This document shows positions 15,754 through 37,930 of a stretch of DNA of 64,000 nucleotides, piece after piece. Within the stretch, counting starts at the first letter, position 1, and the number at the start of each line of letters is the position of its first letter. Made by a program: the position numbers and the translations under genes. The notes beneath the pieces were generated by a model. The model had not been told where the DNA came from. It did not search any database and saw nothing but the letters and a program-made list of their open reading frames with translations. The stretch lies in the sequence record OP729297.1; one strand, 5' to 3'.

Positions 15754-16263
15754 ATGTGGGCGGAAATTTTAGACAAGTTGCTCGCGTCCAACTATGCGAC
15801 TGTCTTCTCTGTTGTTCTACTGATCATTGGCGGTGGCTATGTTTGGTGGAAAATACTGCCTCAGCTTGAAGAACTGGAGCAACTGAAAGAGCGGAATGCA
15901 GAGCTGGAAGCCGCAACTACTGCTGTCAATCCAGATAGCAGTATAGTGCAAGCCGACTTGGCGCAGATGATGCGACTGATTCAGTCAATCGCTGACTCCG
16001 CACCAGTCGATAATTTGGATATGAAAGAGGGATTGAACTCAGTTCTCCGTGCGATGCAGCGCTTCGAACGAATCATATCCCAGCAGTCCCATGACCATCA
16101 GGTATCAGTCGAGCTAATGCGCGAAGTGCTTGATAAGTTAGGTGGGAGTCAACAAGAACTTGAGAAGCTCGGTCTGCGATTGCAGAGCATATCCAGTTCT
16201 CTTTATACAACCCCGAATGCTCAAGGCAACACGGAGTTGAATGATTTGAGGGCATTGCGATGA
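15754..16263 (+). CDS. Single-pass membrane protein with coiled coil
   Basis: TM segment VFSVVLLIIGGGYVWW followed by heptad-rich LEELEQLKERNAELEAA. Confidence 0.6.
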   Translation: MWAEILDKLLASNYATVFSVVLLIIGGGYVWWKILPQLEELEQLKERNAELEAATTAVNPDSSIVQADLAQMMRLIQSIADSAPVDNLDMKEGLNSVLRAMQRFERIISQQSHDHQVSVELMREVLDKLGGSQQELEKLGLRLQSISSSLYTTPNAQGNTELNDLRALR

Positions 16264-17003
16264 TGGGCTATTTGAAGAATAACATAGGGTTCAGACGATT
16301 CACCGCCGAACGCTATGGTGATTTCTACAAAGCGAAAGCCTTTATGCTTGGTGAAGTCCTTGACTCCAACAGGCATGACTTCACGGCTGCCGCACGAGAA
16401 ACATTGCTTCAATACCTATCTGCGTCGGAGTCTTGGTTGAGAGACATTGAACGTCGATTCATTTCAACTGGTCGTGGTGTCGAAATGGAACACGATGCCA
16501 CTGATATTTTAAGTTCCTTTGCAGATACTGAAAACGAGGTGCTGGGTCTTATGGCCCATCATCCCGAAGACTTTCCCGCGCTGTTCTGTGAGAGTTGGTA
16601 TGAGATGCGTATGGCAATTCGGCCTTACGTTGATCAGATTCTCACACAACAGTTTCGGCAGGACATGAGTGAATCGTTCAAACTTATAGCCGAGTTCATT
16701 ATCGGTTATATGAACTTCACATTGTTTAATTTGCATGAGATTGACTACATCTTGTGTAAGCGTGAACGACCATTCATTTATGCCGACAAGATTGACCTCA
16801 CCATTATGGAACGCGGTGGAGTCAGCGCCCCGGTACTTCGCCTTGAAGTTTATCAACGTCACGGCCTGCTCGATGGGTACGATGTGCCAATCCGAGTGAA
16901 GTACAATATTGATGATAAATATATCAATCTTACGGAAGAAAGAATTACGGCCTACCAGAAGCTACGCTGTAGCCTCGATGACTGTGAAAGTAACTTCTTC
17001 TAA
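16260..17003 (+). CDS. Hypothetical soluble helical protein
   Basis: 247-aa ORF coupled (ATGA overlap) to the previous gene. Confidence 0.55.
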   Translation: MMGYLKNNIGFRRFTAERYGDFYKAKAFMLGEVLDSNRHDFTAAARETLLQYLSASESWLRDIERRFISTGRGVEMEHDATDILSSFADTENEVLGLMAHHPEDFPALFCESWYEMRMAIRPYVDQILTQQFRQDMSESFKLIAEFIIGYMNFTLFNLHEIDYILCKRERPFIYADKIDLTIMERGGVSAPVLRLEVYQRHGLLDGYDVPIRVKYNIDDKYINLTEERITAYQKLRCSLDDCESNFF

Positions 17004-17027
17004 TCCCACGCACTCAGGAGAATGACA

Positions 17028-18647
17028 ATGCGTACTGGTAATATTGAACTGATGCTCAGTGCTCAGATTAAGAACTTCCGTCCAGAGGTTCTTGCTACTG
17101 ACCCAGTTGTAGGCGATCTGGTGCAGGCACAAACTGCACGTATGTGGTACAACAGCACCGACGGGAAGTACAAATACTTCGACTGTACTGCAATCAAAGA
17201 GCTGGGCGGTGGCGGTTCTGTAGAAGGCGCTATCCTGGCTGACGGTACTGTACCGATGACTGCTGACCTGCTGCTGTCTGGCCCTGACCAGTCTGCTTCT
17301 GGTGACAACGCTGCTGTGTCTAAAAAGCACGTTGAAACAGTTGTTGCTACCAAGCAGGACAAGCTGACCGGCCTGACTGAAAACGGCGTAGTGGTTGCTG
17401 GTGCAGACAACGAACTGCAAACCTCAAACGTAACTGCTGCCGAGCTGGGCTATCTGTCTGGCGCAAGCTCCAACATTCAGTCTCAGATCACCGCTGTTAG
17501 CAACAAAGCTAACGCGAACGAAACTGCTCTGGCTGGTAAGCTGAATGCTGCTAACGGCCAACTGACTGGCGACCTCGACGCGAACGGTAACACCGTTTCT
17601 AACCTGGCTGCACCAGCTAACGCGAACGATGCTGCTCGTAAGATCGATATCGACAACGCTATCGCGGGCATCGACTGGCTGCAAGACTCCGATGCTATCC
17701 AGCAGGACGGTACCCTCGATCCAGAGCTGGTTACTGGTAAACAGTACCTGATTCTGGCCGCTGACCAGATCAACCCGAACTTCGGTTCTATCACTGGTCT
17801 TGTAGACAACATGATCGTTCGCTATAACGGCACTGCGTTCGTTATCGTGTTCGACCCTACTGGCAGCGAAGCTGGTGGCGCTGTTACCTGGATTAAGTCC
17901 ATCAAAGAGTATCGTCGTTTTGACGGCACTGTGTGGACTACGTTCGGCGGTGCTTCTGAGTTCAACGCCGGTGACGGTCTGAACAAATCTGGTAACGTTG
18001 TTAACGTCGTTGTTGGTGCTGGTATTCAGATCACCTCTAACGCTGTGACTGCGAAGCTGGACTCTGCTGGTGGCCTGGAAGATAACGCTGGTAGCACTCG
18101 CGTTAAACTGGACGGCGCTACTCTGGCACGTTCTGTCGATGGTCTGGCGATTGCTGACGGCGGTGTGGGCTATACTCAGATTGCTGCGGCTGCCCTGGGT
18201 GATGGCCTGAAACAGGACACCACTAACAGCAAAATCGCTGTTGACGTTGCTGCGGTTAAAACTGCTGGTGGCTTCATCGACGCAAACGGTGGTGACGTTG
18301 ACCACATCAACCTGACTGGTACTGGCGCTCTGACCGACGCTTCTGCTGTCAGCAAGAAATACGTTGACGATGCTATCGCAGGTTCTACTGGCGGCGCTGC
18401 TGCTAAACTGTATCAGTACGACAAAACTGCTGGCGGTGATGCTGCTGCAACTGCCCACACCTTCACGCACAACGCTGGTGTGAAGTACGGTACTGTCACC
18501 GTTGTTGACGACACTGGCTATCAGATCATCCCTGATGAAGTTGTGTTCATCGACGCAAACAGTCTGCGTGTTGAGCTGGCTACTGCGAAGAAAGTCGCAA
18601 TCGCATTCGTAACTGGTGCTAACGCCTACGTTGAACCAGAAGCGTAA
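17028..18647 (+). CDS. Abundant Gly/Ala/Thr-rich fibre-like virion protein
   Basis: AGGAG RBS 7 nt before ATG 17028; strongly biased codons (CTG/AAC/GCT); AGDGL and AANKKYVD-like fibre motifs; C-terminal HNAG module. Confidence 0.7.
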   Translation: MRTGNIELMLSAQIKNFRPEVLATDPVVGDLVQAQTARMWYNSTDGKYKYFDCTAIKELGGGGSVEGAILADGTVPMTADLLLSGPDQSASGDNAAVSKKHVETVVATKQDKLTGLTENGVVVAGADNELQTSNVTAAELGYLSGASSNIQSQITAVSNKANANETALAGKLNAANGQLTGDLDANGNTVSNLAAPANANDAARKIDIDNAIAGIDWLQDSDAIQQDGTLDPELVTGKQYLILAADQINPNFGSITGLVDNMIVRYNGTAFVIVFDPTGSEAGGAVTWIKSIKEYRRFDGTVWTTFGGASEFNAGDGLNKSGNVVNVVVGAGIQITSNAVTAKLDSAGGLEDNAGSTRVKLDGATLARSVDGLAIADGGVGYTQIAAAALGDGLKQDTTNSKIAVDVAAVKTAGGFIDANGGDVDHINLTGTGALTDASAVSKKYVDDAIAGSTGGAAAKLYQYDKTAGGDAAATAHTFTHNAGVKYGTVTVVDDTGYQIIPDEVVFIDANSLRVELATAKKVAIAFVTGANAYVEPEA

Positions 18648-18704: not shown

Positions 18705-19301
18705 ATGAAAGTCCTCGGTAGTTTAGACTTAGAGTTTGGTTCGATTAAGAACTTCAAGTTTGCAGAAGTTACTGATTGGCCAGATAACCCTCAGCCGGGC
18801 ATGGCAATCTTCATGGATAAGCGACTGATGTTCTGTGTTGAGATTTTGGACCTGCCTATCTGGGTTCCACTAACTCAGCAAATGACGATGTACCGTCATG
18901 CTCAGGCGTCTGCTTCATCTCGCTGGGAAATCGCCCACAACATGAACACGGCAACGCCTATCGTGCAGTGCTACGATGAAAACGGCGAAGTGCTGATGCC
19001 ATCTTCAATCAAAGCGCAGGATGCTAACACCACAATCGTGCTGTTCCCTGAGCCTGTTGCTGGTACTGCTGTTCTGCTGTCTGGTATTGAAAGCGGTCTG
19101 CCTGCACCTACGGTTGCATTCACTGCATCATTCACTGATGAAGCTGTATGGGTTGTTACCCACAACCTGGGCTACCATCCTGCTGTTCAGATCCATCAAG
19201 GGTCGAAAGAAGTTCAGCCTAAATCTATCGTCCATGATAGCAATACCCAGCTCACCATCACGTTTGACAGTGCGCAGTCTGGTACTGTTATTCTGTATTA
19301 A
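18705..19301 (+). CDS. Virion protein with two W.I.HN(L/M) modules
   Basis: RWEIAHNMN...PEPVAGTAVL and VWVVTHNLG...SAQSGTVIL. Confidence 0.6.
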   Translation: MKVLGSLDLEFGSIKNFKFAEVTDWPDNPQPGMAIFMDKRLMFCVEILDLPIWVPLTQQMTMYRHAQASASSRWEIAHNMNTATPIVQCYDENGEVLMPSSIKAQDANTTIVLFPEPVAGTAVLLSGIESGLPAPTVAFTASFTDEAVWVVTHNLGYHPAVQIHQGSKEVQPKSIVHDSNTQLTITFDSAQSGTVILY

Positions 19302-19312
19302 GGGAGATTCGC

Positions 19313-19534
19313 ATGATCAACTATTCGATGGGGCGCACCTTTGAACAGGAGACGCCCGCGACCGAATGGACGATCGCACATAACTTCGGCCGCTACGTCG
19401 CAGTGACAACTTGCGTGAATATGCCTGATGGTAAGCTCCATCAAGTGCTACCACTCGATGTTATCGTTGTGGATATGAATACGGTCAAAGTAACATTCCC
19501 GTATGCAGTTACGGGGCATGTGCGGATCGCCTAA
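19313..19534 (+). CDS. Stand-alone W.I.HN module protein
   Basis: EQETPATEWTIAHNFGRY...VTFPYAVTGHVRI; GGGAG RBS. Confidence 0.6.
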   Translation: MINYSMGRTFEQETPATEWTIAHNFGRYVAVTTCVNMPDGKLHQVLPLDVIVVDMNTVKVTFPYAVTGHVRIA

Positions 19535-20133: not shown

Positions 20134-20166
20134 ATGGCCTGTATCGTAATGGTACGGGCCATTTTA
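20134..20166 (+). terminator. Probable terminator hairpin
   Basis: ATGGCCTGTATC-GTAAT-GGTACGGGCCAT followed by TTT. Confidence 0.55.
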
Positions 20167-20188: not shown

Positions 20189-20824
20189 ATGACTTACGTC
20201 CAAGCATTGACGTATGACTTCGATGTTGGCGACAAGACGCGTGTGCTCTTGAGAGCTACAGACGGATTCAACGATCTCGCCGTTCCAGGAAGAAAGCTAA
20301 CACTGTGGACAAGCCCTGTCGTAAGCACGGCACAATCCAAGTTTGGTGGCAAATCCTTTCTGATGAACAACGGTTATGTGGACTTCGGCACCACAGACTT
20401 GCCATTCGAGATCGGTGACTTCACTATTGAGGGCTGGGTGTATACGATTAGTATCACAGGCAATCAGTGGTGGTTGAGTAAGGGTGATGGTGTGTCGAGT
20501 TGCTTTAAGACATATCAAGGCAACGTGTATCTACAGACTCGCACACAATACGCTATGGCTTCTGCTGCTGCGATCATTCCTGTTGGTCGTTGGTATCACC
20601 TAGCGTTAACGCGCAAGGGCAACGTATATACTATCTGGATTGATGGTGTTGCTAAAATGACTACTACTGACACCGCTCCTGGATTCGGCATGTCCGCCGT
20701 ACCTCTGCGCATTGGTGGGTACGAAGGGTCCTCGAATAGTTATTGGGATCAGATTCGTGTGAGTAACTTCTCTCGTTACGACACCACATTCGTACCTCCT
20801 GCTAGCGCATTCGAATTAGATTAA
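20189..20824 (+). CDS. LamG / concanavalin A-like lectin domain protein
   Basis: SKFGG.S...DFTIEGWVY...WYHLALTR.G....WIDG...LRIG...DQIRVS..RY...F.PP. Confidence 0.85.
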   Translation: MTYVQALTYDFDVGDKTRVLLRATDGFNDLAVPGRKLTLWTSPVVSTAQSKFGGKSFLMNNGYVDFGTTDLPFEIGDFTIEGWVYTISITGNQWWLSKGDGVSSCFKTYQGNVYLQTRTQYAMASAAAIIPVGRWYHLALTRKGNVYTIWIDGVAKMTTTDTAPGFGMSAVPLRIGGYEGSSNSYWDQIRVSNFSRYDTTFVPPASAFELD

Positions 20825-20833
20825 GGAGTTTTT

Positions 20834-21877
20834 ATGTTGTATGCCACGTACCATAACAATAAGGCGAATGCGATTGCCAAGCTGGCTGTACATCGAGGTC
20901 TTTACTTTGATGATCAGACAGACATATCAGACGCACACGTTGACGAGGAGCATTACATATCTAAGATTGCTTCTGTCCGTGCTTGGGGAAATAGCTCTGA
21001 TACACAAGGCGACCAAGTTACCTTAAGCCCTATGAGCGGTGTTAAGGACAACTACTTCTACCCTGCGCGTAGTGCTAACCTAATCTCAGGCAACTCTGCT
21101 CCTCACAATAGCTACACGGCAATTCAGACCTATAAGGCTATGGCCGAACGTTATTTCTGTGTGTACGATACAGCCGCAGGAAATGGTCAGCAGTGGGCTA
21201 ACGGCAATCCTGTGTTCAATGGCTGGAACGGCGTCAGTAGAGATACGGGCGAGACTGGTTACTATTGGCCTTCATCCTGTATGCTCGTCTTCCCTGAGAA
21301 CATGCGTGAATCATCCATAATTGAATCATACAGTTCTAAGGCCGGCAGTCAGTATTCTAGGTACGTTGATGGTTTCTGGGGAACGTATAGTGGTTATGAT
21401 GCAGGATTTATGAATGCTTCTCTTAATCTGAATACGCGGGCAGAATCAGGAGCGCAGTCTTACTCCTACATTCAGACTACCTCTTCGCCGATGCAAGGCA
21501 TCCCTTCTGTCCTTAGTGGTCCTGCTTCTAATCCTCATATCACATTCATTAGGCCTGTTGGTAAACGCTACAGCTATAGTGGACTTAATCAGTTTACTGC
21601 TTGGGATGCACCTACTGTTTCGAATGGCGTCGGCGGTTATGTCCGTGATAGTGCGGCTTTTCCTATGCGCACTGCGGTCACTGGAAAAGACAATACGCCT
21701 GACGTGCTTCTGACCTCATGCATGATGATGTTTAAATGCAATGGTCAAGGGTATATGCTTCGTGCCAAAATTGGCCAGGACATTATACAGACCGCACCCG
21801 CGGCCACTGGCGATGTTGCTGTATTGAACATCGAATTTGAGAACCCATTTGGGACCAAAACACTGTTCAAAGTGTAA
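20834..21877 (+). CDS. Fibre-array paralog, long type (divergent)
   Basis: N-terminal GLYFD and C-terminal KIGQDII echo the array base domain; Ser/Gly/Tyr/Asn-rich insert. Confidence 0.45.
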   Translation: MLYATYHNNKANAIAKLAVHRGLYFDDQTDISDAHVDEEHYISKIASVRAWGNSSDTQGDQVTLSPMSGVKDNYFYPARSANLISGNSAPHNSYTAIQTYKAMAERYFCVYDTAAGNGQQWANGNPVFNGWNGVSRDTGETGYYWPSSCMLVFPENMRESSIIESYSSKAGSQYSRYVDGFWGTYSGYDAGFMNASLNLNTRAESGAQSYSYIQTTSSPMQGIPSVLSGPASNPHITFIRPVGKRYSYSGLNQFTAWDAPTVSNGVGGYVRDSAAFPMRTAVTGKDNTPDVLLTSCMMMFKCNGQGYMLRAKIGQDIIQTAPAATGDVAVLNIEFENPFGTKTLFKV

Positions 21878-21886
21878 GGACACAAT

Positions 21887-22837
21887 ATGTTGCTTGTTCT
21901 TCCGAAGCAGGATGATGTTCGTAAATACGGATTCTTCTTCGATTCGAACCAGCAGATACAATTCAAAAGCATATCCGAGCTACGTGATTTAATTCGTAAT
22001 AGCAGAAGCTCCGTTGCAAGTATCTCTGGAAACACGATAACCTGTCAACCAATGATGGGTGTCGCTGCGTACAACACACAAGCACGACTCTATTACTCGA
22101 AGTTAACCATGGTTGCCGAACCGCCGGACTTCACATCGGATGATGGCGTCATTCGAACGTTATTGGTTACAGGTCTTAAGGACGGCTACGGACGTAAGTC
22201 TAGCCAGATGGACTTTATTGATAACTACAACTCGAACACACCATTCACAGGGAATACAACAAACTTTGCATATACGCCTTTCGCATTAGTACCGAGTGCT
22301 ATTCAAGGGACAACGCTACCTACAACATTCCTGGCTTCATTCCCTGATACGCAAGTCACTGTATCGTCTGCTAGTAGACAGACGGGTGATGCTTACAATC
22401 ACAGACGTAGACTGTTTACGTCAACGAGTGCAACTACAGTCACTAAGTCTGTTCACTCGTGGTCGTATAATTTCACAGGCACAAACTACTCCTCATGGGC
22501 ATCTGACCAAACAGACTTGATGGCGTTCAGTATGGGCGCATATCTGGAATCCATTTCAAATGGAGGCTGGTGGCGAGCAACAACTCCAGTACGCCGCAAT
22601 ACCTACGATGCAGGCAAGTATGTTTGCTGCTCAAACCCATACGGAAACAGCGGCTATGCAGAGTCACCGCAGACCATAGATAAGTTCGCGCTGTTTATTT
22701 GGGAAGGTACGCGCGTTCGCACAGTGCTTTATACCGAAGAAGATTTTGGCGTTAAGACATTGGGTGTAGGCAACACAACTTCATTCAATATCCAACCTCA
22801 GCCTGACATATACTCTACAGATCCCATACGTCTGTGA
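21887..22837 (+). CDS. Fibre-array paralog, long type (divergent)
   Basis: YGFFFDS...LRDLIRNSRSSV aligns with AAFFRNG...TDLVASSRAAV of 30646. Confidence 0.5.
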   Translation: MLLVLPKQDDVRKYGFFFDSNQQIQFKSISELRDLIRNSRSSVASISGNTITCQPMMGVAAYNTQARLYYSKLTMVAEPPDFTSDDGVIRTLLVTGLKDGYGRKSSQMDFIDNYNSNTPFTGNTTNFAYTPFALVPSAIQGTTLPTTFLASFPDTQVTVSSASRQTGDAYNHRRRLFTSTSATTVTKSVHSWSYNFTGTNYSSWASDQTDLMAFSMGAYLESISNGGWWRATTPVRRNTYDAGKYVCCSNPYGNSGYAESPQTIDKFALFIWEGTRVRTVLYTEEDFGVKTLGVGNTTSFNIQPQPDIYSTDPIRL

Positions 22838-22862
22838 TGGCCTAGCGTATTCGACTTGTCAG

Positions 22863-22880
22863 TAATTTTATAGCGAGTTA
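22863..22880 (+). promoter_or_regulatory. Candidate late-promoter motif
   Basis: TAATTTTATAGCGAGTTA just upstream of the GGAG RBS of 22895. Confidence 0.45.
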
Positions 22881-22894
22881 ACTGGAGACATACA

Positions 22895-23392
22895 ATGGAA
22901 ATAGTTTCATTCCCTTTGGTCGCCAACGGCATTGTGATTCCAGATGCAGGCAAACGTCCTGTAACTGATCCGCCGTTGAAGTACGGCCTTTCAAACATGC
23001 AGAAGACAATCTGCCTCGCTAAGGTACCTGACCCTGCGAACATTGTTGTTGCCGACGGCACTACAGTGCAGACAGCTATCGGGGCTACTGCGGTGCTTGA
23101 CCTGACTTCTGTTACCGTTAACCCTGTGCGCTGGATTCACGGCTCCGATAACAAATACAAGTTCCGTCTGAGCGCTACGCTGCAAGGCACATTCGCGGGC
23201 ACTATCTCTGATTTGTTGAACGCGTACAACGTGATTGTCTTCAACAAAGATATTGCAAGCACGCCTTATGGTGGCTTCTTGATTCTGACTATCGGCGCTG
23301 CTGGCTCTGGTGCTGACCTGATTCTGTCTGCATCTAACCTGCGTAACGGTAAGTTCCTTGCTACCGTCGTCAAAGATTCTAAGGAGTTCTAA
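22895..23392 (+). CDS. Fibre-array paralog, short type
   Basis: C-terminal TIGAAGSGADLIL motif shared with 28461, 30103 and 31548. Confidence 0.6.
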   Translation: MEIVSFPLVANGIVIPDAGKRPVTDPPLKYGLSNMQKTICLAKVPDPANIVVADGTTVQTAIGATAVLDLTSVTVNPVRWIHGSDNKYKFRLSATLQGTFAGTISDLLNAYNVIVFNKDIASTPYGGFLILTIGAAGSGADLILSASNLRNGKFLATVVKDSKEF

Positions 23393-24348
23393 TGCGCATC
23401 TTAGGACACAACCTTCTGCCTTTCAGTGTGCTCAACTTAGGTTCTGGTTGGGCGTCGAACGCGGCTAACGGCATTCCTGTTAACGTATTCTTCTTCGACA
23501 CTGAGATGGCCGATCAAGGTAACTTCTCACAGCATCTGTTGGACATGCGTAACCTGTTCGACAACGCTGTTGCTGCAACACGACTCACACTGCGTCCAAC
23601 TACAGAAGGCCTGTTGCCTCTTATGGACCAACAGGAAGGATGGAAAGCTCGTTCTGGTCATGTGTATGAGATCAAGAACGGCGCTACCGTACACTACCCG
23701 TCTAAGGCTCGTCCTATCGGTTATAACGGTGCGGCTTCTGTTCAGATTCAAACTGCGTACACCACAAGCAACGATGCAGGTAACAAAGCTCTGTGGGGAG
23801 CTGGTCCTGCTGGCTATCGTGCATGGGACTATGCGGGCGTTCCTCACGACGCACTCATGCCTGGCATTCATCTGTCAACAACTGACCTGACGTTTGACTT
23901 CGCTGTTACGATTGATGCGGTGCTGTCTGACGTTGGTGATATGAGCACTGCCGCAGCAGGTACCATTGCTCCTATTGATGGTTCTGGCGTTGTTGGTACT
24001 GCTGTCGCTTGGTCGATTGCAGCAAACCAAGAGGGCAACGTGATTGCTACCGCTGTGCCTCAGTCCAACCGCTACCGCTTCATTCAGACGTCTGGTACTC
24101 GTCGTGTGCTGCCTGTAACTGCATCAGATGTAGGCCGCAACGCAGCATACAGAACGATTAAGACAGCGCTGGTTGTTATTCAAGACACCAACTACGGTGC
24201 TCTAGCGAATGGCAGCTACATCCCTACTTACTTCGCATGTGAAGTAGGCGCCATTGGTAGCGGCAAACCTATCGAGTTACTTTCTACAGCACTCGGTCCT
24301 GGTGAGTTTGCTTCTGTCGCCCAGCTTCGTCTGTCTACCGAGGTATAA
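23392..24348 (+). CDS. Fibre-array paralog, long type with discoidin-like insert
   Basis: VFFFDT; LTFDFAVTID...SNRYRFIQ insert; EVGAIGSGKPIEL. Confidence 0.55.
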   Translation: MRILGHNLLPFSVLNLGSGWASNAANGIPVNVFFFDTEMADQGNFSQHLLDMRNLFDNAVAATRLTLRPTTEGLLPLMDQQEGWKARSGHVYEIKNGATVHYPSKARPIGYNGAASVQIQTAYTTSNDAGNKALWGAGPAGYRAWDYAGVPHDALMPGIHLSTTDLTFDFAVTIDAVLSDVGDMSTAAAGTIAPIDGSGVVGTAVAWSIAANQEGNVIATAVPQSNRYRFIQTSGTRRVLPVTASDVGRNAAYRTIKTALVVIQDTNYGALANGSYIPTYFACEVGAIGSGKPIELLSTALGPGEFASVAQLRLSTEV

Positions 24349-24349
24349 C

Positions 24350-25438
24350 ATGAACTATAAGTTGTTTGCTAACTCTGCTGTGCCTCAGTTGACACGTTTG
24401 TTTGCTCAAGCGACGGCGGATGATAAGTCCTGCTATCTGGTAAAGCTGAATGCGGGTTACACCGAAGCAGATATCAACAAGTGCCTTAACTACCAGACAC
24501 AAACTGGCGCAGGATATGTGTTCGATGCAGCACTTGCAGCGTCCAGCGGTATCTGTACTGTGTTGGCCAAAGGCACTAACTGCGTTCGTACTATTGATCG
24601 CAACAAGCTGTCTATCTCTGACTGCTTGCTTACGGCTTTAGCGGAAGGTGTGCCTACCCATCTCATTCTCGGTGGCATTCTCCCTATCTGCCTGACTGTG
24701 GGCACGGATGTGACGTTGCTCTATCCTGACCTGAACATCAAGTATGACCCTAATGGCTATAAGACGCAGATCACTATCCTTGCGTTCTCTATCAGCCTGA
24801 CGCAGATGTGGTCAGAGACTACTGGCGCTACGTGGCTGACAGGTTCTGAGTCTACAGCATTCGACCTTGGTTGCTTCAACACTGGAGCATTCACTGACTA
24901 CGTAGGTATTGCGTACACATCGACAGGAACCAAAGTTGCCACAGACGGTCAAGGTATCGATCTCGGCACTGCCGGTGTAATCTCAACACCATCTGTTCCT
25001 GGTTTCGATCCGAGTAAGTCATTCACGATTGAGTGTGACTACCACCAATCAGGTAACGCTGATTATGCAGAATGGTCGATTTTAAAGATCGGTACGGGCA
25101 CCTCAGACCGCTTTGCAATCGCGTTCGACCGCTCAAACGAGCGTGGTCTGTGTATATGGAACAACACTAACGGCGGTTCTGCTACGGCCAAAGTGTCGCG
25201 TTCTATCTCTGCCTACTCGGCTCTGTGGTCAGGCAGTATTGTCCATATCAAGTATGTGTACGATGCTACGACCAACCAACATACTGTGTATATCAACGGT
25301 ACTCAGGTTGATCAGTTCACCTACGCAGTCACCAAGCCAGCCTCAGCAACAATACAGCAGGTAACTGGCGGCTATGGTGGAGGCAATGCAACGTATACAC
25401 CTATCGTCAATAACTACAGCGTGAGACAAGGAGCATAA
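24350..25438 (+). CDS. Fibre-array paralog with C-terminal LamG/ConA-like domain
   Basis: ATG 24350 after a GAGGT RBS; LTVGTDV base motif; FTIECD...HIKYVYD...VYINGTQV. Confidence 0.6.
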   Translation: MNYKLFANSAVPQLTRLFAQATADDKSCYLVKLNAGYTEADINKCLNYQTQTGAGYVFDAALAASSGICTVLAKGTNCVRTIDRNKLSISDCLLTALAEGVPTHLILGGILPICLTVGTDVTLLYPDLNIKYDPNGYKTQITILAFSISLTQMWSETTGATWLTGSESTAFDLGCFNTGAFTDYVGIAYTSTGTKVATDGQGIDLGTAGVISTPSVPGFDPSKSFTIECDYHQSGNADYAEWSILKIGTGTSDRFAIAFDRSNERGLCIWNNTNGGSATAKVSRSISAYSALWSGSIVHIKYVYDATTNQHTVYINGTQVDQFTYAVTKPASATIQQVTGGYGGGNATYTPIVNNYSVRQGA

Positions 25439-25439
25439 C

Positions 25440-25895
25440 ATGTTTGTACCTGTCATTGCGTATGATCCTGATCTCTTTGCTGACTTCGTGTTCGTTATGT
25501 CGCAGCTTGAAATCAGCACGGCATCACAGCCGTCTAAGCCTACGACGAACGAGAAAGCCACATACATTCCTCATGAACGTGTGGCTGATGTTCTGTCTCA
25601 AACGATTCCTGTGTATCGTTGGTCACAGATTCTCAATCAGCAGATAACGAGCGCAGACACGCTTGTGTTTGTTGCAGCACTTGTCACTCAGGTGCAGTCG
25701 AAATTCACGGCCCGCACGTTTAACTCCAGTGTCACGCCAGGCCGTATCGACGTACCTCTGGCTACTGGTGCTTTCGTGACTGACCAGACCATTGAACCGC
25801 TGTTTGATAACATCGTGTTCCGTGTGTCGGTTCCTGCGCTTGACCTGTCTGATACGAAAGCGAATAACAAATCTGTTGCACCGGTGGTGAGCTAA
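25440..25895 (+). CDS. Probable fibre-array protein, short type (divergent)
   Basis: AAGGAG RBS; size and position fit the array, but sequence similarity is weak. Confidence 0.4.
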   Translation: MFVPVIAYDPDLFADFVFVMSQLEISTASQPSKPTTNEKATYIPHERVADVLSQTIPVYRWSQILNQQITSADTLVFVAALVTQVQSKFTARTFNSSVTPGRIDVPLATGAFVTDQTIEPLFDNIVFRVSVPALDLSDTKANNKSVAPVVS

Positions 25896-26800
25896 TGAAG
25901 ATCATTAACACACGTATCATGGCGCAAGCAGTTGTAGGCACGAACGCAAACACGGCAGCACTACTCAACGACCCAAACGTAGGTGCTGGCTGGAACATCT
26001 TTGCGTTTAGTGGCAAACTGCCTACGTCTAAAGAAGGCTTCGAAGCGGCCTTCAACAATAAGTCACTTGCTGATATGTATAACCAAGCTATCGGCATTGT
26101 GCGAAACCCTATTACTGGTATTGAAAACGGCAACGTGATTGCACTTGCCCTTCAATCTCAGTACATCCCTAAAGGGGTATCGTACTATGGGACCATTGGC
26201 ACTCCTGCTATTGTGGTATCTCAACTTGTGCCTCATCGTATCACTCGTTCAGGCGTTACTGATCGTAACATCACGTTAGTTATGGGAGCTGGTGGCGTTG
26301 CAGAACCTGCTGTTCGTTTCGGTGGTGTCGATATTGACATTGAGTTCGATACGGCTGTCACAGTGACACATATCAAATTTAATAGTGCCGTGACTGATGG
26401 CTTCCAGTTGGTTGCGCTATCTGACGATGGAACCACTGAGTCAACTCTTGGTGGAGCTTCCACAGTTACAGGTGACGCCACCGCCATGTCTCTGTCCGAG
26501 CCTAAGGCGTCGAAGCGCTATCGCTTTAAGTCAACGAGCCTGACCGCAGCAAGCGCTATGCGTGTGCTACTCAGCTCTGTTGATGTGCCGTCTTCTGTTG
26601 CTGTAACTTCTCCTACGTGGGCGGCGCTCGCACACTGTAATACGTTCACGCACGGCGATACCGATTACTCGGACAGCATCATGTACACTGCCGGCGCTGT
26701 GGGGAATCAGGGTCCGTTCAAGCTGGTGGATCAGGTTATCCCAAGTCAGAAGACGTTGATGTACTGTCCTAAACTGCGATTCACGCAAAGGAGTAGCTGA
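25895..26800 (+). CDS. Fibre-array paralog, long type with discoidin-like insert
   Basis: IFAFSGKLPT; IDIEFDTAVTVTHI...SKRYRFK; AGAVGNQGPFKL. Confidence 0.6.
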   Translation: MKIINTRIMAQAVVGTNANTAALLNDPNVGAGWNIFAFSGKLPTSKEGFEAAFNNKSLADMYNQAIGIVRNPITGIENGNVIALALQSQYIPKGVSYYGTIGTPAIVVSQLVPHRITRSGVTDRNITLVMGAGGVAEPAVRFGGVDIDIEFDTAVTVTHIKFNSAVTDGFQLVALSDDGTTESTLGGASTVTGDATAMSLSEPKASKRYRFKSTSLTAASAMRVLLSSVDVPSSVAVTSPTWAALAHCNTFTHGDTDYSDSIMYTAGAVGNQGPFKLVDQVIPSQKTLMYCPKLRFTQRSS

Positions 26801-27378
26801 TGTATATCTCTAAAGCAATGCTCAACATGCGCGGGGATTCGCTTGGGTCAACGGCCAACCCGACTGTTGAAAACCCGTGTCAGCCTGCATCTTTTGTGGG
26901 ATATAACTCAGGTAATCTACAGGCTGGTGGCATTCCGATCTCGGCCGAAGTTACTGCCGCTCTTGTTTTCTCTGCTGGCGATACTATTCCCGATTCAGTG
27001 TGGAACAACCAAGCGCAGGCACCATTCAGTCTGACTTCATTGCGCACATACCTGACAGCGAACGTTCCTGGCTGCGTAATGGAATCAACCTTTGCCTCGT
27101 CTGGTACGATTCGTATCGTCAATCTGGGCAACGGTAAGCGCATGTTCGATCTGTATACTGCGCTCGGTCGCTTCGCCTATGCTAAGGCGTTCAACCGCAT
27201 GTATCTGCTGTTGAGCAATAGCGCGTCTGCTCTTGGGACAGGTACGGCTTCTGTTTCATCTCTGGTTGAGTTCACACCGCAAGATTTGATCTCTATGGGT
27301 GTTCCTCTGACTGATAACGGTGATGGTACGTTCAACCTGAATGGCACTGTCAATATCAACAACATCACATTCAGCTAA
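26800..27378 (+). CDS. Fibre-array paralog, short type
   Basis: MYISKAMLN start like 28461 and 30103; LVFSAGDTIP. Confidence 0.5.
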   Translation: MYISKAMLNMRGDSLGSTANPTVENPCQPASFVGYNSGNLQAGGIPISAEVTAALVFSAGDTIPDSVWNNQAQAPFSLTSLRTYLTANVPGCVMESTFASSGTIRIVNLGNGKRMFDLYTALGRFAYAKAFNRMYLLLSNSASALGTGTASVSSLVEFTPQDLISMGVPLTDNGDGTFNLNGTVNINNITFS

Positions 27379-27387
27379 GGACGCATT

Positions 27388-28464
27388 ATGGAACTCTTTC
27401 CGTATCAGGCAGCGAACGTAGCTTCTCTGTTCTCGCTCGGCCTGTTGTACGATACAGACGTGCCTGAGAATGGTGAGCGTGGTATTCACAGCACGTTCAA
27501 CGATGCCATTACGATTCGTCTGCTACAAAAGACGCCAATGAGCACAGCGCCGTTTCGTTGGCAGTACACGCCAGTATCGGCCTCGACCTTTGTCGGTAAT
27601 AACTTCTACCCAGCTTGGGTGGAGATTAACGCCACGTTCGGATATGGCGCTGCGATCAACGCAATGACTCGCATCATTCCTAAGTTGCGTCTGCCTGCAC
27701 TCGACAACCGTTTTGCTGCAACTGTCGGTAAGTATAACGAGAGTGTGGCAACTACTATCCTTGCGCACAAGATGGGCAACGCGGCAAGCCAATTCTCAAC
27801 GACTACCAGTCTGTACTTGAGTCCTCAGTACAATCTAACAGAAGCAGGTAATTGGCTGATCGCCGAGTATGATTTCGGTGCCGAGATGGAACTCAAAGGT
27901 CTCGTGGGTGTTTCAGTAGGCGCTGCCGTGAACACACTTATGGTACTCGGTACACAAGGTACCGTACTGCAAGCCTATGTCAACGGTCAGTGGGTAGATG
28001 CGGTAGACTGCTACGCTAACGTTCGTACAATAACTAACTGGGCGCCTATTGCATATACGCTGCCTGCATCTGTCAAAGCTCAGAAGTTTAGGCTGATCAA
28101 TAAATCAGTATCATGGCCGTGGACAACGCTGGGCCACTATCCGTTTAGCTTGCAGTTCTACGGCAACTATACAGGTGTTAAGCCTCGCACGTTAGGTAAG
28201 TATAAGCACATGTCTGTGCTCAACCTGATTGCCAGCGCAAGCTATGCAAACAGCACTCAGTGGCACTTCAACTGGCCTGCCTTAGAGGCTACGGTTGCTG
28301 GCCGATACTTCGGTATGACACACTTCACTGTCACCGACGACGTTAAGCTGTCAGCCAGTAACGATATCGTAATGCTGGACACAACGTATAACACAGCATT
28401 CGGTGAAGCGCCTGTGCCTACGTTCCGTGTGAAGCAAGACGCACTCGTAGGGAGGGGCGTATGA
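27388..28464 (+). CDS. Fibre-array paralog, long type with discoidin/F5-8-like insert
   Basis: AEYDFGAE...LQAYVNGQWVD...LPASVKAQKFRL; clearly paralogous to 29046. Confidence 0.65.
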   Translation: MELFPYQAANVASLFSLGLLYDTDVPENGERGIHSTFNDAITIRLLQKTPMSTAPFRWQYTPVSASTFVGNNFYPAWVEINATFGYGAAINAMTRIIPKLRLPALDNRFAATVGKYNESVATTILAHKMGNAASQFSTTTSLYLSPQYNLTEAGNWLIAEYDFGAEMELKGLVGVSVGAAVNTLMVLGTQGTVLQAYVNGQWVDAVDCYANVRTITNWAPIAYTLPASVKAQKFRLINKSVSWPWTTLGHYPFSLQFYGNYTGVKPRTLGKYKHMSVLNLIASASYANSTQWHFNWPALEATVAGRYFGMTHFTVTDDVKLSASNDIVMLDTTYNTAFGEAPVPTFRVKQDALVGRGV

Positions 28465-28985
28465 TTAGCAATAAAGCCGTTTCTATGGCTCAGATGAATG
28501 CTGCCTTTCCAGCGACTGCAATCGTAGCCAACTCTCTGCATATTGGTCTGTTCAAAGGCACAGCTCCTAAGATTAGTAAGGCGCTTGACGTGTTACCTCC
28601 AGGTGCTGTCAATAGTCTACTGAACTGGAACACCGTGTGTGCAAACCTGGGACTTGTGTCCGCCGATTTTCTCGGTGTACTGGCCTCTGCTGCGATCACA
28701 CCTGTTGTTAACACACAGGCGCGTACAGTAACACTGCCTCTTGCTGGGCAGGCTGCTACTCTTACTGGTGTTGCTGACGGTACGCCTACGTTCTACGTTG
28801 CACGTATTCTGCCTGCAAACGCATCGAACAACTGGGCCGGCTTTGCATACAGCGCCAGTCTGACAGGACCATTCTGGATTGGCTCTGTGGGTACGCAGGG
28901 TTCTGATGCCGAACTCCAGTTCATTGGAGGTCAGATTAAAACAGGTCAGGCCTATCGCTTCCTCGATCTGACTATCCAACTGTAA
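28461..28985 (+). CDS. Fibre-array paralog, short type
   Basis: LFKGTAP...ADGTPTFY...GSVGTQGSDAELQF.GG.I..G..Y...DLTI. Confidence 0.7.
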   Translation: MISNKAVSMAQMNAAFPATAIVANSLHIGLFKGTAPKISKALDVLPPGAVNSLLNWNTVCANLGLVSADFLGVLASAAITPVVNTQARTVTLPLAGQAATLTGVADGTPTFYVARILPANASNNWAGFAYSASLTGPFWIGSVGTQGSDAELQFIGGQIKTGQAYRFLDLTIQL

Positions 28986-28990
28986 TACAC

Positions 28991-29014
28991 ACGTGGTGGC
29001 TTCGGCTGCCACGT
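28991..29014 (+). terminator. C(UUCG)G hairpin
   Basis: ACGTGGTGGC-TTCG-GCTGCCACGT, followed by TAATTT at 29018. Confidence 0.55.
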
Positions 29015-29045
29015 CATTAATTTGAACTGTCTTTAAACCAAGGGC

Positions 29046-30101
29046 ATGTATATGAAAATTGTACCTATCTATCAGAACACACCACTTGCTGTGTTCGGCG
29101 CCTTCATGGAAGGGAATCTTCCGACTACACTGAACTACGATCTCCAAACTGTGTTGAATAACATGGTGAGTGGTCGTGCTTTTCTGCAAAACAACATCGG
29201 TAACTCCCAGCAGCAACTGGTGCCTACCGCTGTCTCTAACTACCAAGTATCTCCAGCTCCTGCCTGGACTACTGTGCAGGGCTACCGTGGAAAGCGCGTC
29301 CTGCCTAAAGTGACCTTCGCAACATACAGCACTGTCTATCAAGATCTTGTGGCCAACCTGTCCCTCAACAGCACACAGCTTGATATGTTGTTCTTCACTA
29401 TTCTGGCCCACCGCACCGCGTCCACTACAGCCGCATATATTGGGCCGTGTATTTCAACGAACTCATCTGTACCTCCGGTTAAGAACGTCAACGCAGATGG
29501 GTCATGGACTCTTGCTGAATATGATTTTGGCGCTGAGGTTGTAGTAAATAGTTTGGCTGCAATATGCATGATACCAGCGAATAACTTGTTCAGTGTCACA
29601 GCAGGAAACTTAACCTTCCTGCAAGTTCAGCAGGGTAGCTCCTGGGTTGACGTGACGAACATCAACACGAACCTATCCGTCACCACAGCACAATCCGAGA
29701 AGTATTTCCAGCTCCCTGCTACAGTTCAAGGTCGTCGCTGGCGTGTCGTCTCTAAAGCGGCAACCAACCCATTCCCTACAGGGTTGGGTCCGTTTATTTT
29801 GCACTTCTATGGCGACTACGTTTCAGGTACGTCACCACGTACTCTGGCAAAGATTCAACACGCAGTGATCATGCCTGTTATGTATGCCACAACGTGGGGT
29901 TCTGTGTCTATGTCTAACGGCCTAAGCACGGTGGCATACGGACGCTACTTCGGTCACTATGGCCTGACTGTTACTGACGATTTGAAACAGGCCGCAAACT
30001 TTGACCTCGTTATCAATGACGCCACTGTTTACCCTGCGCAGGAACAAGCTGTAAGCTCGTTCACTGTAACCTATAAACCTGCCGCAACTGAGGTATACTA
30101 A
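29046..30101 (+). CDS. Fibre-array paralog, long type with discoidin/F5-8-like insert
   Basis: AEYDFGAE...FLQVQQGSSWVD...LPATVQGRRWRV; GRYFG..TVTDD. Confidence 0.65.
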   Translation: MYMKIVPIYQNTPLAVFGAFMEGNLPTTLNYDLQTVLNNMVSGRAFLQNNIGNSQQQLVPTAVSNYQVSPAPAWTTVQGYRGKRVLPKVTFATYSTVYQDLVANLSLNSTQLDMLFFTILAHRTASTTAAYIGPCISTNSSVPPVKNVNADGSWTLAEYDFGAEVVVNSLAAICMIPANNLFSVTAGNLTFLQVQQGSSWVDVTNINTNLSVTTAQSEKYFQLPATVQGRRWRVVSKAATNPFPTGLGPFILHFYGDYVSGTSPRTLAKIQHAVIMPVMYATTWGSVSMSNGLSTVAYGRYFGHYGLTVTDDLKQAANFDLVINDATVYPAQEQAVSSFTVTYKPAATEVY

Positions 30102-30102
30102 T

Positions 30103-30636
30103 ATGCGCGTCTCAAAAGCATACAACACACTCCAGGCCCAAATTGCTCTTTGCATCCGTATGCCACCAGGACAGGCAGTCACGGCTGGAGCTGTTCACGT
30201 TGCCCTGTTCTCAGGCACTCCTCCTACAGATGACCAGTTGCAGACACTGCTGGCTACAACTAACACGATGACCTCGTGGTCTGCATCACTTATCTCAGCA
30301 TTTGCAACACAGACGAATTTCTTGGGTAACGTTGCTCTAGGCGCGTTCGTTCCAACTATGGACTTCGACAACAACGTGTTTAATCTGCCGTTAAGTGCTC
30401 AGACTAACCTGTTCACTATCGCAACGTCGGGAACACCTACATGGTTTATGTTGCGTCAGTGCTCCGCGGCATCGAACGCTGACGCTTGGGCAAACTTTGT
30501 ATCAGGTACCAACCTGTACAACTGCATCGTCGGTACTGTTGGTGACGAGAACTCCGCAGCAGATCTCAAAATCGTTGGTGGTGCTGTTACTGCTGGTCAG
30601 CCTGTGCGCGTACCTGATATGCGTATCAAACTCTAA
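30103..30636 (+). CDS. Fibre-array paralog, short type
   Basis: LFSGTPP...SGTPTWF...GTVGDENSAADLKIVGG. Confidence 0.7.
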   Translation: MRVSKAYNTLQAQIALCIRMPPGQAVTAGAVHVALFSGTPPTDDQLQTLLATTNTMTSWSASLISAFATQTNFLGNVALGAFVPTMDFDNNVFNLPLSAQTNLFTIATSGTPTWFMLRQCSAASNADAWANFVSGTNLYNCIVGTVGDENSAADLKIVGGAVTAGQPVRVPDMRIKL

Positions 30637-30645
30637 GGAGGCATT

Positions 30646-31548
30646 ATGTTAGTCTCTGAAAAACAGGCGCTGTATCAGCTACTGCAAACAGTTGGTACTA
30701 GCGCCAGTAACGGCTGGGCTGCTTTCTTCCGAAACGGAAGTAGCAACAACGTACCGAAAGCGTTTACTGATCTCGTGGCTTCATCTCGCGCTGCCGTTGA
30801 GTTGAAGTACCAAACGCAGACCGCAGACCCTAATGGCATTCTGTGTCGTCAGTACAGCAAGGTTAGAAGCCTGATGCCTATTGGTGGCTACGGTCAAGGC
30901 CGTGTCGCATTTGACGCTACAACCAAACAGTCTGTGCAAACGTATGCAGTGTTCCCTGAATACTCGCGCTATACACCATCTATTGGTTGGTCTAAAACAC
31001 CTCAGCAGATAATGGCCAACGTTTGCTCCTGCTCTGACATTACGTTGCCTATTGCTCAGTCTTGGGATGCGAACGATACAATGGAGTACGACTACGGACG
31101 TACTCTGCGTTTCCGTTCATTTATGATCGCAACCTCGGGTATAAACACAGGCAATATCCGACTGGAGTATCAAGACCCGACGACTCTGGTGTGGACGCGC
31201 ATCGTAGTTGCTCTTGGTATGAATGAAGTCGATATCACAGCACGTAAACTGCGTATCAACACGAACGGTACCTCATCGGTCACCCAAATCATGTTTACGC
31301 CGTATGCAGAGAAAGGCAGTGACTTCGTTACAGCCGCTTTTACACACGCTGTGCTCGTACCTCTGACGCCTGCTGTCCCTACAACAACTCAGCCCTATCT
31401 TGGGGCAAGCGCCGAAGACTATTATGGTCTTGTGCTTGATGTAGGTACGGATATCGTACTCGGTACTCCGTCTATCGGCCAGTATGGAACTCTTGCGGTA
31501 TCTGATTTCACTATCCGCATCTCTGATAACTTCTTGGGGAGTGTATAA
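30646..31548 (+). CDS. Fibre-array paralog, long type with discoidin-like insert
   Basis: MEYDYG...LEYQD...W...ITARKLRI; LDVGTDIVL. Confidence 0.6.
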   Translation: MLVSEKQALYQLLQTVGTSASNGWAAFFRNGSSNNVPKAFTDLVASSRAAVELKYQTQTADPNGILCRQYSKVRSLMPIGGYGQGRVAFDATTKQSVQTYAVFPEYSRYTPSIGWSKTPQQIMANVCSCSDITLPIAQSWDANDTMEYDYGRTLRFRSFMIATSGINTGNIRLEYQDPTTLVWTRIVVALGMNEVDITARKLRINTNGTSSVTQIMFTPYAEKGSDFVTAAFTHAVLVPLTPAVPTTTQPYLGASAEDYYGLVLDVGTDIVLGTPSIGQYGTLAVSDFTIRISDNFLGSV

Positions 31549-32147
31549 TGAAGATGCTTCCAGCAACCGCTAACGCCATGATGCGAAATGCGCTTATCAA
31601 CTTGGTAGGTAACGCATCACCTACGGCGTTTACTGCCACTACCATGTCTGTTTTGTTCTACACAGGCACGATGCCGACCAAAGCAGAGGTGCAATCGCTA
31701 CTCGCTGAGGGAACACAGTTGGCCGGTGGTAACGCAGCGTACACGCGAGTAGGTCCTTTGTTTACTGCGCGTGTTGCAGACTACGTTGGCGGTGTGACGG
31801 GCAACAAGCCTGTTGTTACTCAGATGGCAAACAACGTCATTGTTCCTATGTCTTCTGCGATGAACATGCGTCTGAATAACACCTACAACGACTACCGTGC
31901 AAGCTACTTCCTGAAAGACGCTTTCCCTACATGGTGTATCGTCATCGGTGCGTATTCGAATACAGTTAACTTGCAGACAGGCAGCAACGATGCAGGAGCT
32001 TCTTTCCTCGCAGTCTGTAGTGTTGGTGACGAAAACTCAAACGCAGACTTGAAGCTGCTTGGTGGCAAGGTGTATGCAAACAACACCACGCCAACTGACC
32101 AGTCGAAAGCTGTTATCATTAACGACCTTGTTTTGAAATTCGCTTGA
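31548..32147 (+). CDS. Fibre-array paralog, short type
   Basis: FYTGTMPT...PTWC...SVGDENSNADLKLLGG...DLVLKF. Confidence 0.7.
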   Translation: MKMLPATANAMMRNALINLVGNASPTAFTATTMSVLFYTGTMPTKAEVQSLLAEGTQLAGGNAAYTRVGPLFTARVADYVGGVTGNKPVVTQMANNVIVPMSSAMNMRLNNTYNDYRASYFLKDAFPTWCIVIGAYSNTVNLQTGSNDAGASFLAVCSVGDENSNADLKLLGGKVYANNTTPTDQSKAVIINDLVLKFA

Positions 32148-32427: not shown

Positions 32428-32456
32428 AAGGGCGGCTTCGGCTGCCCTTTCTTTTT
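32428..32456 (+). terminator. Rho-independent terminator with UUCG loop
   Basis: AAGGGCGGC-TTCG-GCTGCCCTTTCTTTTT. Confidence 0.85.
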
Positions 32457-37584: not shown

Positions 37585-37930
37585 GATTCTTCCTCATGTG
37601 AATAGAAAGGCGGTGCGCGAGCAACTGATCATAATGAGTCATGTTCATGTTGCGCATATCGCGTAGTGTATTGGTTGCCACTGTCAAGACTTCACTGTCG
37701 TCGCAGATGGGCATGTAAATAAAACCGTCAACCCACTTAACAAGAGCGAACCACTCAGGCTCCTTGCGAGTGATCTTATCGCAGCGCATTACCACACGCA
37801 GATGACGTTTACGAAAACCCCACCAGCTAGTTTCGCTGACGGTCAATACCGCAGTAGCGTGTTTGTTTTTAACTTCCATGTTTTCAACCAACACGCTACG
37901 AGTTTTAAACGGAGGCAGCTTCATGTCCAT
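37556..37930 (-). CDS. Hypothetical protein
   Basis: GGAG RBS; 124 aa. Confidence 0.5.
   Translation of the reverse strand: MDMKLPPFKTRSVLVENMEVKNKHATAVLTVSETSWWGFRKRHLRVVMRCDKITRKEPEWFALVKWVDGFIYMPICDDSEVLTVATNTLRDMRNMNMTHYDQLLAHRLSIHMRKNHGRLISASV

Follow-up and report, generated by a model that had tools for sequence, protein, structure and literature searches.

What is encoded by a long run of adjacent genes that closes the tail module of a jumbo phage and in which no gene has an assigned function? In Erwinia phage vB_Ea_2910A (Alexandravirus; OP729297.1; 262,854 bp), 14 consecutive + strand open reading frames (ORFs) correspond at 100% identity to coding sequences WAK44375–WAK44388, every one annotated "hypothetical protein". 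They occupy 20834–32147 of the window, by which we mean the whole 64,000-nucleotide (nt) stretch of the record analysed here (window position = record position minus 62,000), and are called g01 to g14 below. An original prediction, made from the sequence alone, had described the region as a tandem array of about 14 paralogous fibre genes, alternately short and long, whose products form hair-like appendages with swapped lectin-like heads. Here we show by profile-profile comparison that ten of the 14 genes are paralogous, and we trace the short members to the garland proteins of Agrobacterium phage 7-7-1. Our preferred explanation, to which we assign a probability of roughly 0.55, is that the region is an expanded garland-type family encoded as long-short units and making up a tail-fibre network at the baseplate periphery.

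Ten of the fourteen genes form one superfamily

All-against-all BLASTP of the array linked only g09 with g11 (E 1e-33) and g10, g12 and g14 with one another. PHROGs spread the array over nine separate families, with g01 and g02 in none, and hhalign with 8-sequence orthologue alignments added only a weak g04-g07 link beyond the BLAST families. Taken alone, BLASTP and these shallow alignments would have spoken against paralogy, a reading overturned by deeper and more diverse profiles. A deep profile of the short family was obtained from a whole-library hidden Markov model (HMM) search that collected 157 representatives at E≤1e-3, almost all of 160–215 amino acids (aa). Run against the 206 ORFs of the window, the short-family HMM placed g03 directly after the three family members (E 8.7e-6) and also recovered g07 (E 9.5e-5) and g04 (E 2.9e-4), with noise beginning at E 0.034; the g07 match came in two pieces, residues 21–62 and 221–287, lying on either side of an insert.

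In a later profile-profile round, orthologues from phages Yoloswag, JA13 and fHe-Yen9-02 were added to the alignments. The short profile was now joined to g03, g08 and g04 (hhalign probabilities in Table 1) and to g07 (58.7%), g04 was joined to g07 (91.7%) and to g09/g11 (66.9%), and g09/g11 were joined to g13 over most of its length (Table 1). Control comparisons with 15 unrelated neighbouring gene families (n = 165 comparisons) reached a maximum of 1.5%. Because the link probabilities lie between 59 and 100% and the controls do not exceed 1.5%, the ten genes g03, g04 and g07–g14 form one connected superfamily at the level of sequence profiles. The all-versus-all profile alignment that had been proposed as a check thus finds ten homologous genes and a shared base domain, where BLAST and shallow profiles linked two small families only; as to the remainder of the roughly 14 paralogues originally claimed, g05, g01 and g02 are weakly linked and g06 is unlinked.

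The shared motifs that had been noted at the outset were borne out as well. An N-terminal F-x-G-x-x-P, a central P-T-W and a C-terminal V-G-D motif are invariant or nearly so in the short family, and all three lie in register in g03, g04 and g07 in the short-family profile alignment, where residues 198–315 of g04 align to profile positions 57–175. A local iterative HMM search seeded with the short family brought no expansion, and HMMs of the N-terminal, insert and C-terminal segments of g09/g11 matched no other protein of the window. Supplying AlphaFold secondary-structure (SS) strings to hhalign gave an SS score of 0 and left the outcome unchanged.

Garland-type bases and lectin-type heads

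AlphaFold models were made for g12 and g09, while the folds of g03–g08, g11, g13 and g14 rest on profiles. The g12 model, built from a 50-sequence alignment, was confident (predicted local distance difference test score [pLDDT] 91; predicted template-modelling score [pTM] 0.86) and gave one significant Foldseek match in the PDB, 9rkv_A (E 6.6e-5, probability 1.0, template-modelling [TM] scores 0.50/0.62). Chain A of PDB 9RKV is identical to gp014 of phage 7-7-1 (record NC_019519), a dimeric garland protein at the distal baseplate that was resolved in the virion (PMC12796354). The deep short-family profile matched 7-7-1 gp012 with 94.1% by hhalign (E 1.2e-7; 22 bits by HMM) and gp014 with 9.4% (10 bits by HMM); the two 7-7-1 proteins are paralogues (31% identical), and both are annotated as virion structural proteins. 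On the combined evidence of the predicted g12 fold, its Foldseek match to 9RKV chain A and the 94% profile match, we conclude that the short genes g03, g08, g10, g12 and g14 are homologues of gp012/gp014 and, following the literature, of gp125/gp127 of phage Milano. That the array consists of fibre genes, in the usual trimeric sense, is not supported; the only solved relative, gp014, is a dimeric garland protein.

Against BFVD, the g12 model matched small proteins of Alexandra, Yoloswag and JA13, including a 186-aa Yoloswag protein and a 197-aa JA13 protein that would be g08 orthologues, judging by length and position. Sequence-profile searches of the PDB with alignments of g05, g07, g09, g12, g13 and the LamG module gave no match. 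In phage Milano, 18 homo- or heterodimers of gp125/gp127 (~30% identical) make up a beads-on-a-string garland (PMC10811340, Sonani et al.). A candidate for a covalent chain of garland domains, P0146 (1617 aa, "5 stretches"), was rejected after scoring negatively against the deeper profile. On a metagenomic contig of an unrelated phage (L012 9482–10885), a 169-aa and a 294-aa gene stand between PTR-repeat tail-fibre genes and the gene for a 914-aa PKD-domain protein, and the C-terminal half of the garland domain is present in the 294-aa gene; a short+long pair therefore exists outside the jumbo clade too. Within 7-7-1 itself, the gene that separates the garland paralogues is gp013 (L011 5824–6321). 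It is similar to the long tail fibre gp015 at two places in the latter (E 4e-5 and 2e-3), and its placement parallels the layout of Milano and of this array, in which another gene lies between garland genes.

Small genes found 3′ of fibre genes are often assembly chaperones (Tfa-type). The array might by this token encode non-virion products, either assembly factors or chaperones for the upstream fibres or proteins that modify the host surface during infection, and g03 orthologues are indeed annotated "putative membrane protein" in several records. However, in the alignment the hydrophobic stretch of g03 falls on the family's conserved V-G-D strand, lectin-type inserts are unusual for chaperones, and the 7-7-1 homologues are virion proteins, gp014 by structure and both by annotation. 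We consider a non-virion role very unlikely.

The long members g04, g07, g09, g11 and g13 appear to consist of the same base with a jelly roll of ~100–120 aa inserted in a loop, which is discoidin/F5-8C-like where tested, namely in the g09 model (pLDDT 88, pTM 0.90). Foldseek returned 56 PDB matches to this model at E≤1e-3, with E down to 6.5e-6; among the matches listed, almost all are discoidin, F5/8C (factor VIII C2), CASPR2, neuropilin b1, DDR2 or CBM32 domains, with TM to target of ~0.4–0.48. The matched part is an all-beta stretch at about residues 148–266, indicating that the g09 insert is, in the model, a discoidin/F5-8C-like jelly roll inside the middle of the protein, with putative ligand binding. 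By homology to g09, a discoidin-like insert is also predicted in g11 (100%) and g13 (96%). The earlier proposal of discoidin-like inserts in the long members, and of a jelly-roll fold for them, is thus upheld by fold for g09 and by homology for g11 and g13, with no Pfam match alongside. In P0214 (555 aa), a distantly related member of the family, an N-terminal garland domain is joined to an F5_F8_type_C domain that is Pfam-significant (43.9 bits); its gene lies in an array of short and long genes resembling this one, on a metagenomic contig of a jumbo phage.

A second kind of head occurs in g05, which by sequence would be a short-type N-domain, weakly linked to the family, with a LamG-like domain added C-terminally. 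Its C-terminus matches Laminin_G_3 (PF13385) at 27.0 bits (E 5.6e-6), so that the LamG-like assignment made at the start finds a match, yet one that falls under the gathering score of 27.6; three of nine homologous segments match Laminin_G_3 at E≤0.01.

We then asked whether the heads are exchanged between bases. Compared across orthologues, the inserts of g09, g11 and g13 show the same degree of conservation as the bases, and the idea of hypervariable heads was rejected on this ground. In the comparison of g09 with g11, conservation is highest in the insert (34% identity, versus 18% for the N-terminal base), and the inserts were therefore inherited, not exchanged. The g07 insert is more variable than its base among orthologues (0.52 versus ~0.8 identity), as is the LamG-like module of g05. 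The fHe-Yen9-02 orthologue of g05 is 150 aa long and comprises the N-domain only, in Dickeya phage JA13 a LamG-like module is fused to the g04 orthologue (524 aa), and in SNUABM_46 the module is a stand-alone 215-aa gene. The LamG-like module thus moves between g05, the g04 orthologue and a stand-alone gene. The notion of swapped inserts accordingly applies to this module, as the JA13 fusion illustrates, and not to orthologues of g09, g11 and g13; that heads differ between members and can move between bases is correct.

A conserved block, a variable cassette and their surroundings

Array composition across related phages separates the 14 genes, which had been taken as one array, into two parts. 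The first, g03–g14 (22895–32147), is a conserved block of 12 genes, nearly all of which belong to one protein superfamily. Each of them has a single counterpart, at the same place in the order and of almost equal length, in AD1, five SNUABM phages, Alexandra and Y3. Its most conserved gene is g03 (orthologues 84–98% identical), and g06 has orthologues in all relatives at 42–93% identity. Yoloswag and JA13 retain the order with one long-short unit fewer (a single copy), so g09-g10 and g11-g12 are a tandem duplication of a two-gene unit, and fHe-Yen9-02 has an extra long-short unit located after a 79-aa gene. The block would have grown by tandem duplication of such units, each a long gene followed by a translationally coupled short one. 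The repeating module that had been proposed is therefore real as a two-gene unit, in the order long then short and not short then long.

The gene anatomy of the block agrees with what had been described. Between 25440 and 32147 the sizes are 151/301/192/358/174/349–351/177/300/199 aa, a strict short-long alternation that random ordering of five short and four long genes would give 1 time in 126, and the short/long order is preserved in the relatives examined from other genera. Gene junctions are mostly tight across the array, with eight of 13 overlapping or 1 nt apart and four more separated by 9-nt spacers; larger gaps precede g03 (57 nt) and g11 (60 nt). Within g07–g14, each of the four long-to-short junctions is tight by this measure (overlap or 1 nt), and gaps of 9–60 nt occur at three of the four short-to-long ones. 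An antisense ORF of 264 aa across the g10-g11 junction (28617–29411, − strand) was set aside as probably no gene, being annotated in no relative. The GC content of the region is ~0.50 and its base composition is flat.

The second part, comprising g01, g02 and the LamG gene that starts at 20189, is a separate cassette whose copy number and type vary between related phages, a pattern typical of exchangeable receptor-binding genes. Clustering of eight loci gave a g01 family of 18 members (335–365 aa; 1–4 copies per phage) with only an N-terminal module of ~75–120 aa in common and a divergent remainder; profile links between the g01 and g02 families are 55–87%. At the g01 position Yoloswag carries five genes of ~320–360 aa, at least two of them in the g01 family by BLAST. 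Orthologues of g02 are confined to AD1 and SNUABM_35, apart from a distant one in SNUABM_20, and fHe-Yen9-02 has neither a g01-family nor a g02-family gene. The 20189 LamG gene has an orthologue only in AD1, and in PHROGs it matches giant baseplate-wedge proteins and virion proteins over their LamG parts.

Two local differences were seen in the relatives. Between the g02 and g03 orthologues, Dickeya phage AD1 (L002 10005–11004) has ~940 bp more, including the 164-aa AD1_088, which is the main indel between otherwise ~90% identical arrays. In Erwinia phage Alexandra (L005 9355–9933) the g08 orthologue is annotated as two genes, Alexandra_86 and Alexandra_85, despite an uninterrupted 192-aa ORF; this split is probably an annotation issue.

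Upstream of the array and on the same strand are genes for a tail protein, three collagen-like tail-fibre paralogues, a virion structural protein, a 193-aa protein with a weak tail-fibre C-terminus and the 211-aa LamG protein, and ~1.4 kb downstream the coding strand switches. With tail and fibre genes before it and the strand switch after it, the array therefore closes the tail and fibre module. The coordinates of its genes are collected in Table 1.

Table 1. Genes of the array and the adjacent LamG gene, in window coordinates
Feature	Position	Strand	Evidence or remark
Neighbour, 211-aa LamG-domain protein, variable cassette region	20189..20824	+	Pfam Laminin_G_3 48.2 bits, above cut-off
g01, 347 aa, variable cassette family	20834..21877	+	No PHROG or Pfam match
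g02, 316 aa, second variable cassette family	21887..22837	+	Orthologue distribution sporadic
g03, 165 aa, short garland-family member	22895..23392	+	hhalign 92.9% to deep short-family profile
g04, 318 aa, long member, garland-type base plus insert	23392..24348	+	hhalign 77.5% to short-family profile
g05, 362 aa, N-domain (~residues 1–150) plus LamG-like C-terminal domain (nt 24965–25375)	24350..25438	+	Laminin_G_3 27.0 bits
g06, 151 aa, short gene, family link not demonstrated	25440..25895	+	Orthologues in all relatives
g07, 301 aa, long member, garland domain split by ~100–160-aa insert	25895..26800	+	HMM pieces flank insert
g08, 192 aa, short garland-family member	26800..27378	+	hhalign 86.4% to short-family profile, full length
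g09, 358 aa, long member, discoidin-like insert nt 27829–28185	27388..28464	+	AlphaFold and Foldseek
g10, 174 aa, short garland-family member, 4-nt overlap with g09	28461..28985	+	hhalign 99.9% to g12; phrog_17152
g11, 349–351 aa (annotated start 29052), long g09 paralogue, insert ~nt 29481–29837	29046..30101	+	hhalign 100% to g09
g12, 177 aa, short garland-family member	30103..30636	+	AlphaFold model; top PDB match 9rkv_A
g13, 300 aa, long member	30646..31548	+	hhalign 96.1% to g09/g11, residues 10–300
g14, 199 aa, short garland-family member, last of array	31548..32147	+	hhalign 99.2% to g12; phrog_17152

Several other features of the window were recorded. GC-rich hairpins on the + strand lie 3′ of the 193-aa gene (20134–20162; 13-bp stem), between g10 and g11 (28991–29014; 10-bp stem) and 3′ of the 79-aa gene that comes after the array (32428–32449; 9-bp stem and T-run). 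Intergenic gaps are few here, and each of these three hairpins, sitting in one, may mark a transcript end or act in RNA stability. The three upstream tail-fibre paralogues (4641–6080, 6080–6712 and 12393–13214, + strand) share an N-terminal ~150–200 aa that matches tail-fibre and collagen-like minor-tail PHROGs. Four further + strand genes (13676–14500, 17022–18647, 18705–19301 and 19313–19534) have a common module of ~60 aa (BLAST E 1e-5 to 1e-4; cross-matching PHROGs), one PHROG of which is labelled HNH endonuclease despite the location of the genes in a structural block. The + strand gene at 16260–17003 has a PHROG match labelled "ABC transporter (moron)", a label also carried by its fHe-Yen9-02 orthologue, and no Pfam domain. 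On the − strand, 37908–38636 encodes a 243-aa protein with a Pfam HD_4 domain. Its orthologues by position carry, in AD1, Y3 and JA13, the annotation GTP pyrophosphokinase or (p)ppGpp synthetase/hydrolase, so that the phage may here have a gene for alarmone metabolism.

Proposed placement in the virion and comparison with known systems

Under the explanation we prefer, the products of g03–g14 are most likely virion proteins of a tail-fibre network at the baseplate periphery. In this picture a long and a short protein would pair into a heterodimeric bead, and such beads would brace the many fibres or link them to one another. A fixed set of lectin-type domains would be exposed on the beads and would bind host surface polysaccharide weakly and multivalently, before attachment becomes irreversible.

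Several observations weigh against this explanation. The N-domain of g05 reaches ~10% to the short family, little above the controls, g01 (7.6% to g09) and g02 (6.6% to g13) are slightly above them, and g06 has no profile link to any other array member by hhalign or HMM. For g09, g11 and g13 the link to the garland base runs through g04 alone, at the 66.9% given above; compared directly with the short family, these three score 0.4–11% (g13: 11%). The fold match between g12 and gp014 is moderate (TM 0.5–0.62; root-mean-square deviation 6.8 Å). Pfam F5_F8_type_C (PF00754) has no match at E≤1 in any array protein, nor does it match any of 31 g09-family or 32 g07-family members. For this clade, a literature search that took in Yoloswag, JA11, fHe-Yen9-02 and the SNUABM phages turned up neither a virion proteome nor a structure of any member, and long-short pairing and ligand binding are pure inference. 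Finally, T4 gp8 and A511 gp105 are not among the top 50 PDB Foldseek matches of the g12 model and were not found by sequence-profile search of PDB sequences.

The absence of these two proteins also bears on a different placement, in which the array products are proximal connectors of the T4 gp8 / A511 gp105 type (BW3TFN) and each long-short dimer anchors one kind of fibre to the baseplate wedge. The garland fold and dimer of Milano have been likened to T4 gp8 and A511 gp105 (Sonani et al., PMC10811340), and the phage encodes many fibre-like proteins that need attachment points. Yet neither protein was recovered in our searches, and outward-facing lectin-type inserts suit a peripheral position better than a buried connector; we find this placement improbable.

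Alternatively, in line with the original prediction, short+long pairs may polymerise into the tail hairs of "hairy Myoviridae", with a succession of different lectin heads on each hair. The term hairy Myoviridae has been applied to Y3 and to AD1, which is closely related and has the same array. For 7-7-1, with its homologous garland genes, bushy tail fibres are said to adorn the tail (PMC12796354), and the Milano garland proteins are said to make a beads-on-a-string filament (PMC10811340). An ordered array of ~12 subunits that is kept in all relatives examined would also suit a filament of defined composition. In both solved cases, that of 7-7-1 gp014 (9RKV chain A) among them, the homologues are nevertheless located at the distal baseplate and not along the sheath. 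In addition, the three upstream collagen-like tail-fibre paralogues (4641–6712 and 12393–13214) are at least equally good candidates for the hairs, and no homologue was recovered from Lu11 and PaBG, "hairy" relatives that infect Pseudomonas, by tblastn with g12, a single-sequence search and hence weak evidence. On balance we regard array-built hairs as unlikely. Improbable, too, is a more specific version, in which a beads-on-a-string filament of about six long-short garland-type dimers, in genetically fixed order and each with its own lectin-type head, constitutes the hairs of the hairy jumbo myoviruses of Erwinia, Dickeya and Yersinia and would be a new, non-trimeric phage appendage.

Garland proteins were recognised only in 2024–2025, in two small Agrobacterium phages. 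The present analysis expands the family to at least ten members across a jumbo-phage clade of plant and animal enterobacteria, with lectin-type domains in half of the members and heads that move between bases, which suggests that garland proteins are adhesion modules and more than mere braces. It also gives names and testable structural hypotheses to 12–14 "hypothetical" genes present in the related genomes examined and offers candidate components for the unexplained "hairy" morphology. Since these phages are studied as biocontrol agents against fire blight and soft rot, knowing the genes of the adsorption apparatus helps in reading their genomes.

Among known modules, the g09 insert superposes on the discoidin/F5-8 type C/CBM32 domains of CASPR2, factor VIII C2, neuropilin b1, DDR2 and CBM32 proteins, but unlike these it is inserted inside another domain, not appended, and has no sequence-level Pfam match. 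The g05 C-terminus (27.0 bits) and the 20189 gene (48 bits) match the Laminin_G_3/concanavalin A-like family PF13385, a type also found in giant baseplate-wedge proteins; unlike Laminin_G_3 domains elsewhere, the g05 module is attached to a small garland-type N-domain and lies just under the curated cut-off. The Rak2-like CBB and phiKp24 clusters likewise assemble many adhesion-related paralogues in one jumbo-myovirus block. Those multi-fibre clusters encode long trimeric fibres or depolymerases, whereas this array encodes small dimer-type proteins. T4 gp8 and A511 gp105 are described as similar to the garland proteins in fold and dimer and as also forming chains of dimers (PMC10811340), a likeness not recovered here by Foldseek (top 50 matches) or sequence profile; unlike the products of this array, they sit close to the baseplate wedge and are without lectin inserts.

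The closest counterparts are the garland proteins of 7-7-1 and Milano, which are likewise small (~140–180 aa), agree in fold (Foldseek probability 1.0), show homology by profile (94% to gp012) and are encoded beside tail-fibre genes as two or more diverged paralogues; in both phages a further gene separates the paralogues (gp014-gp013-gp012 in 7-7-1; gp125-gp126-gp127 in Milano). In contrast to those systems, the family described here has a putative virion location and is encoded in a 263-kb jumbo phage, and it comprises repeated long-short units with at least ten members instead of two, half of them with an internal lectin-type domain.

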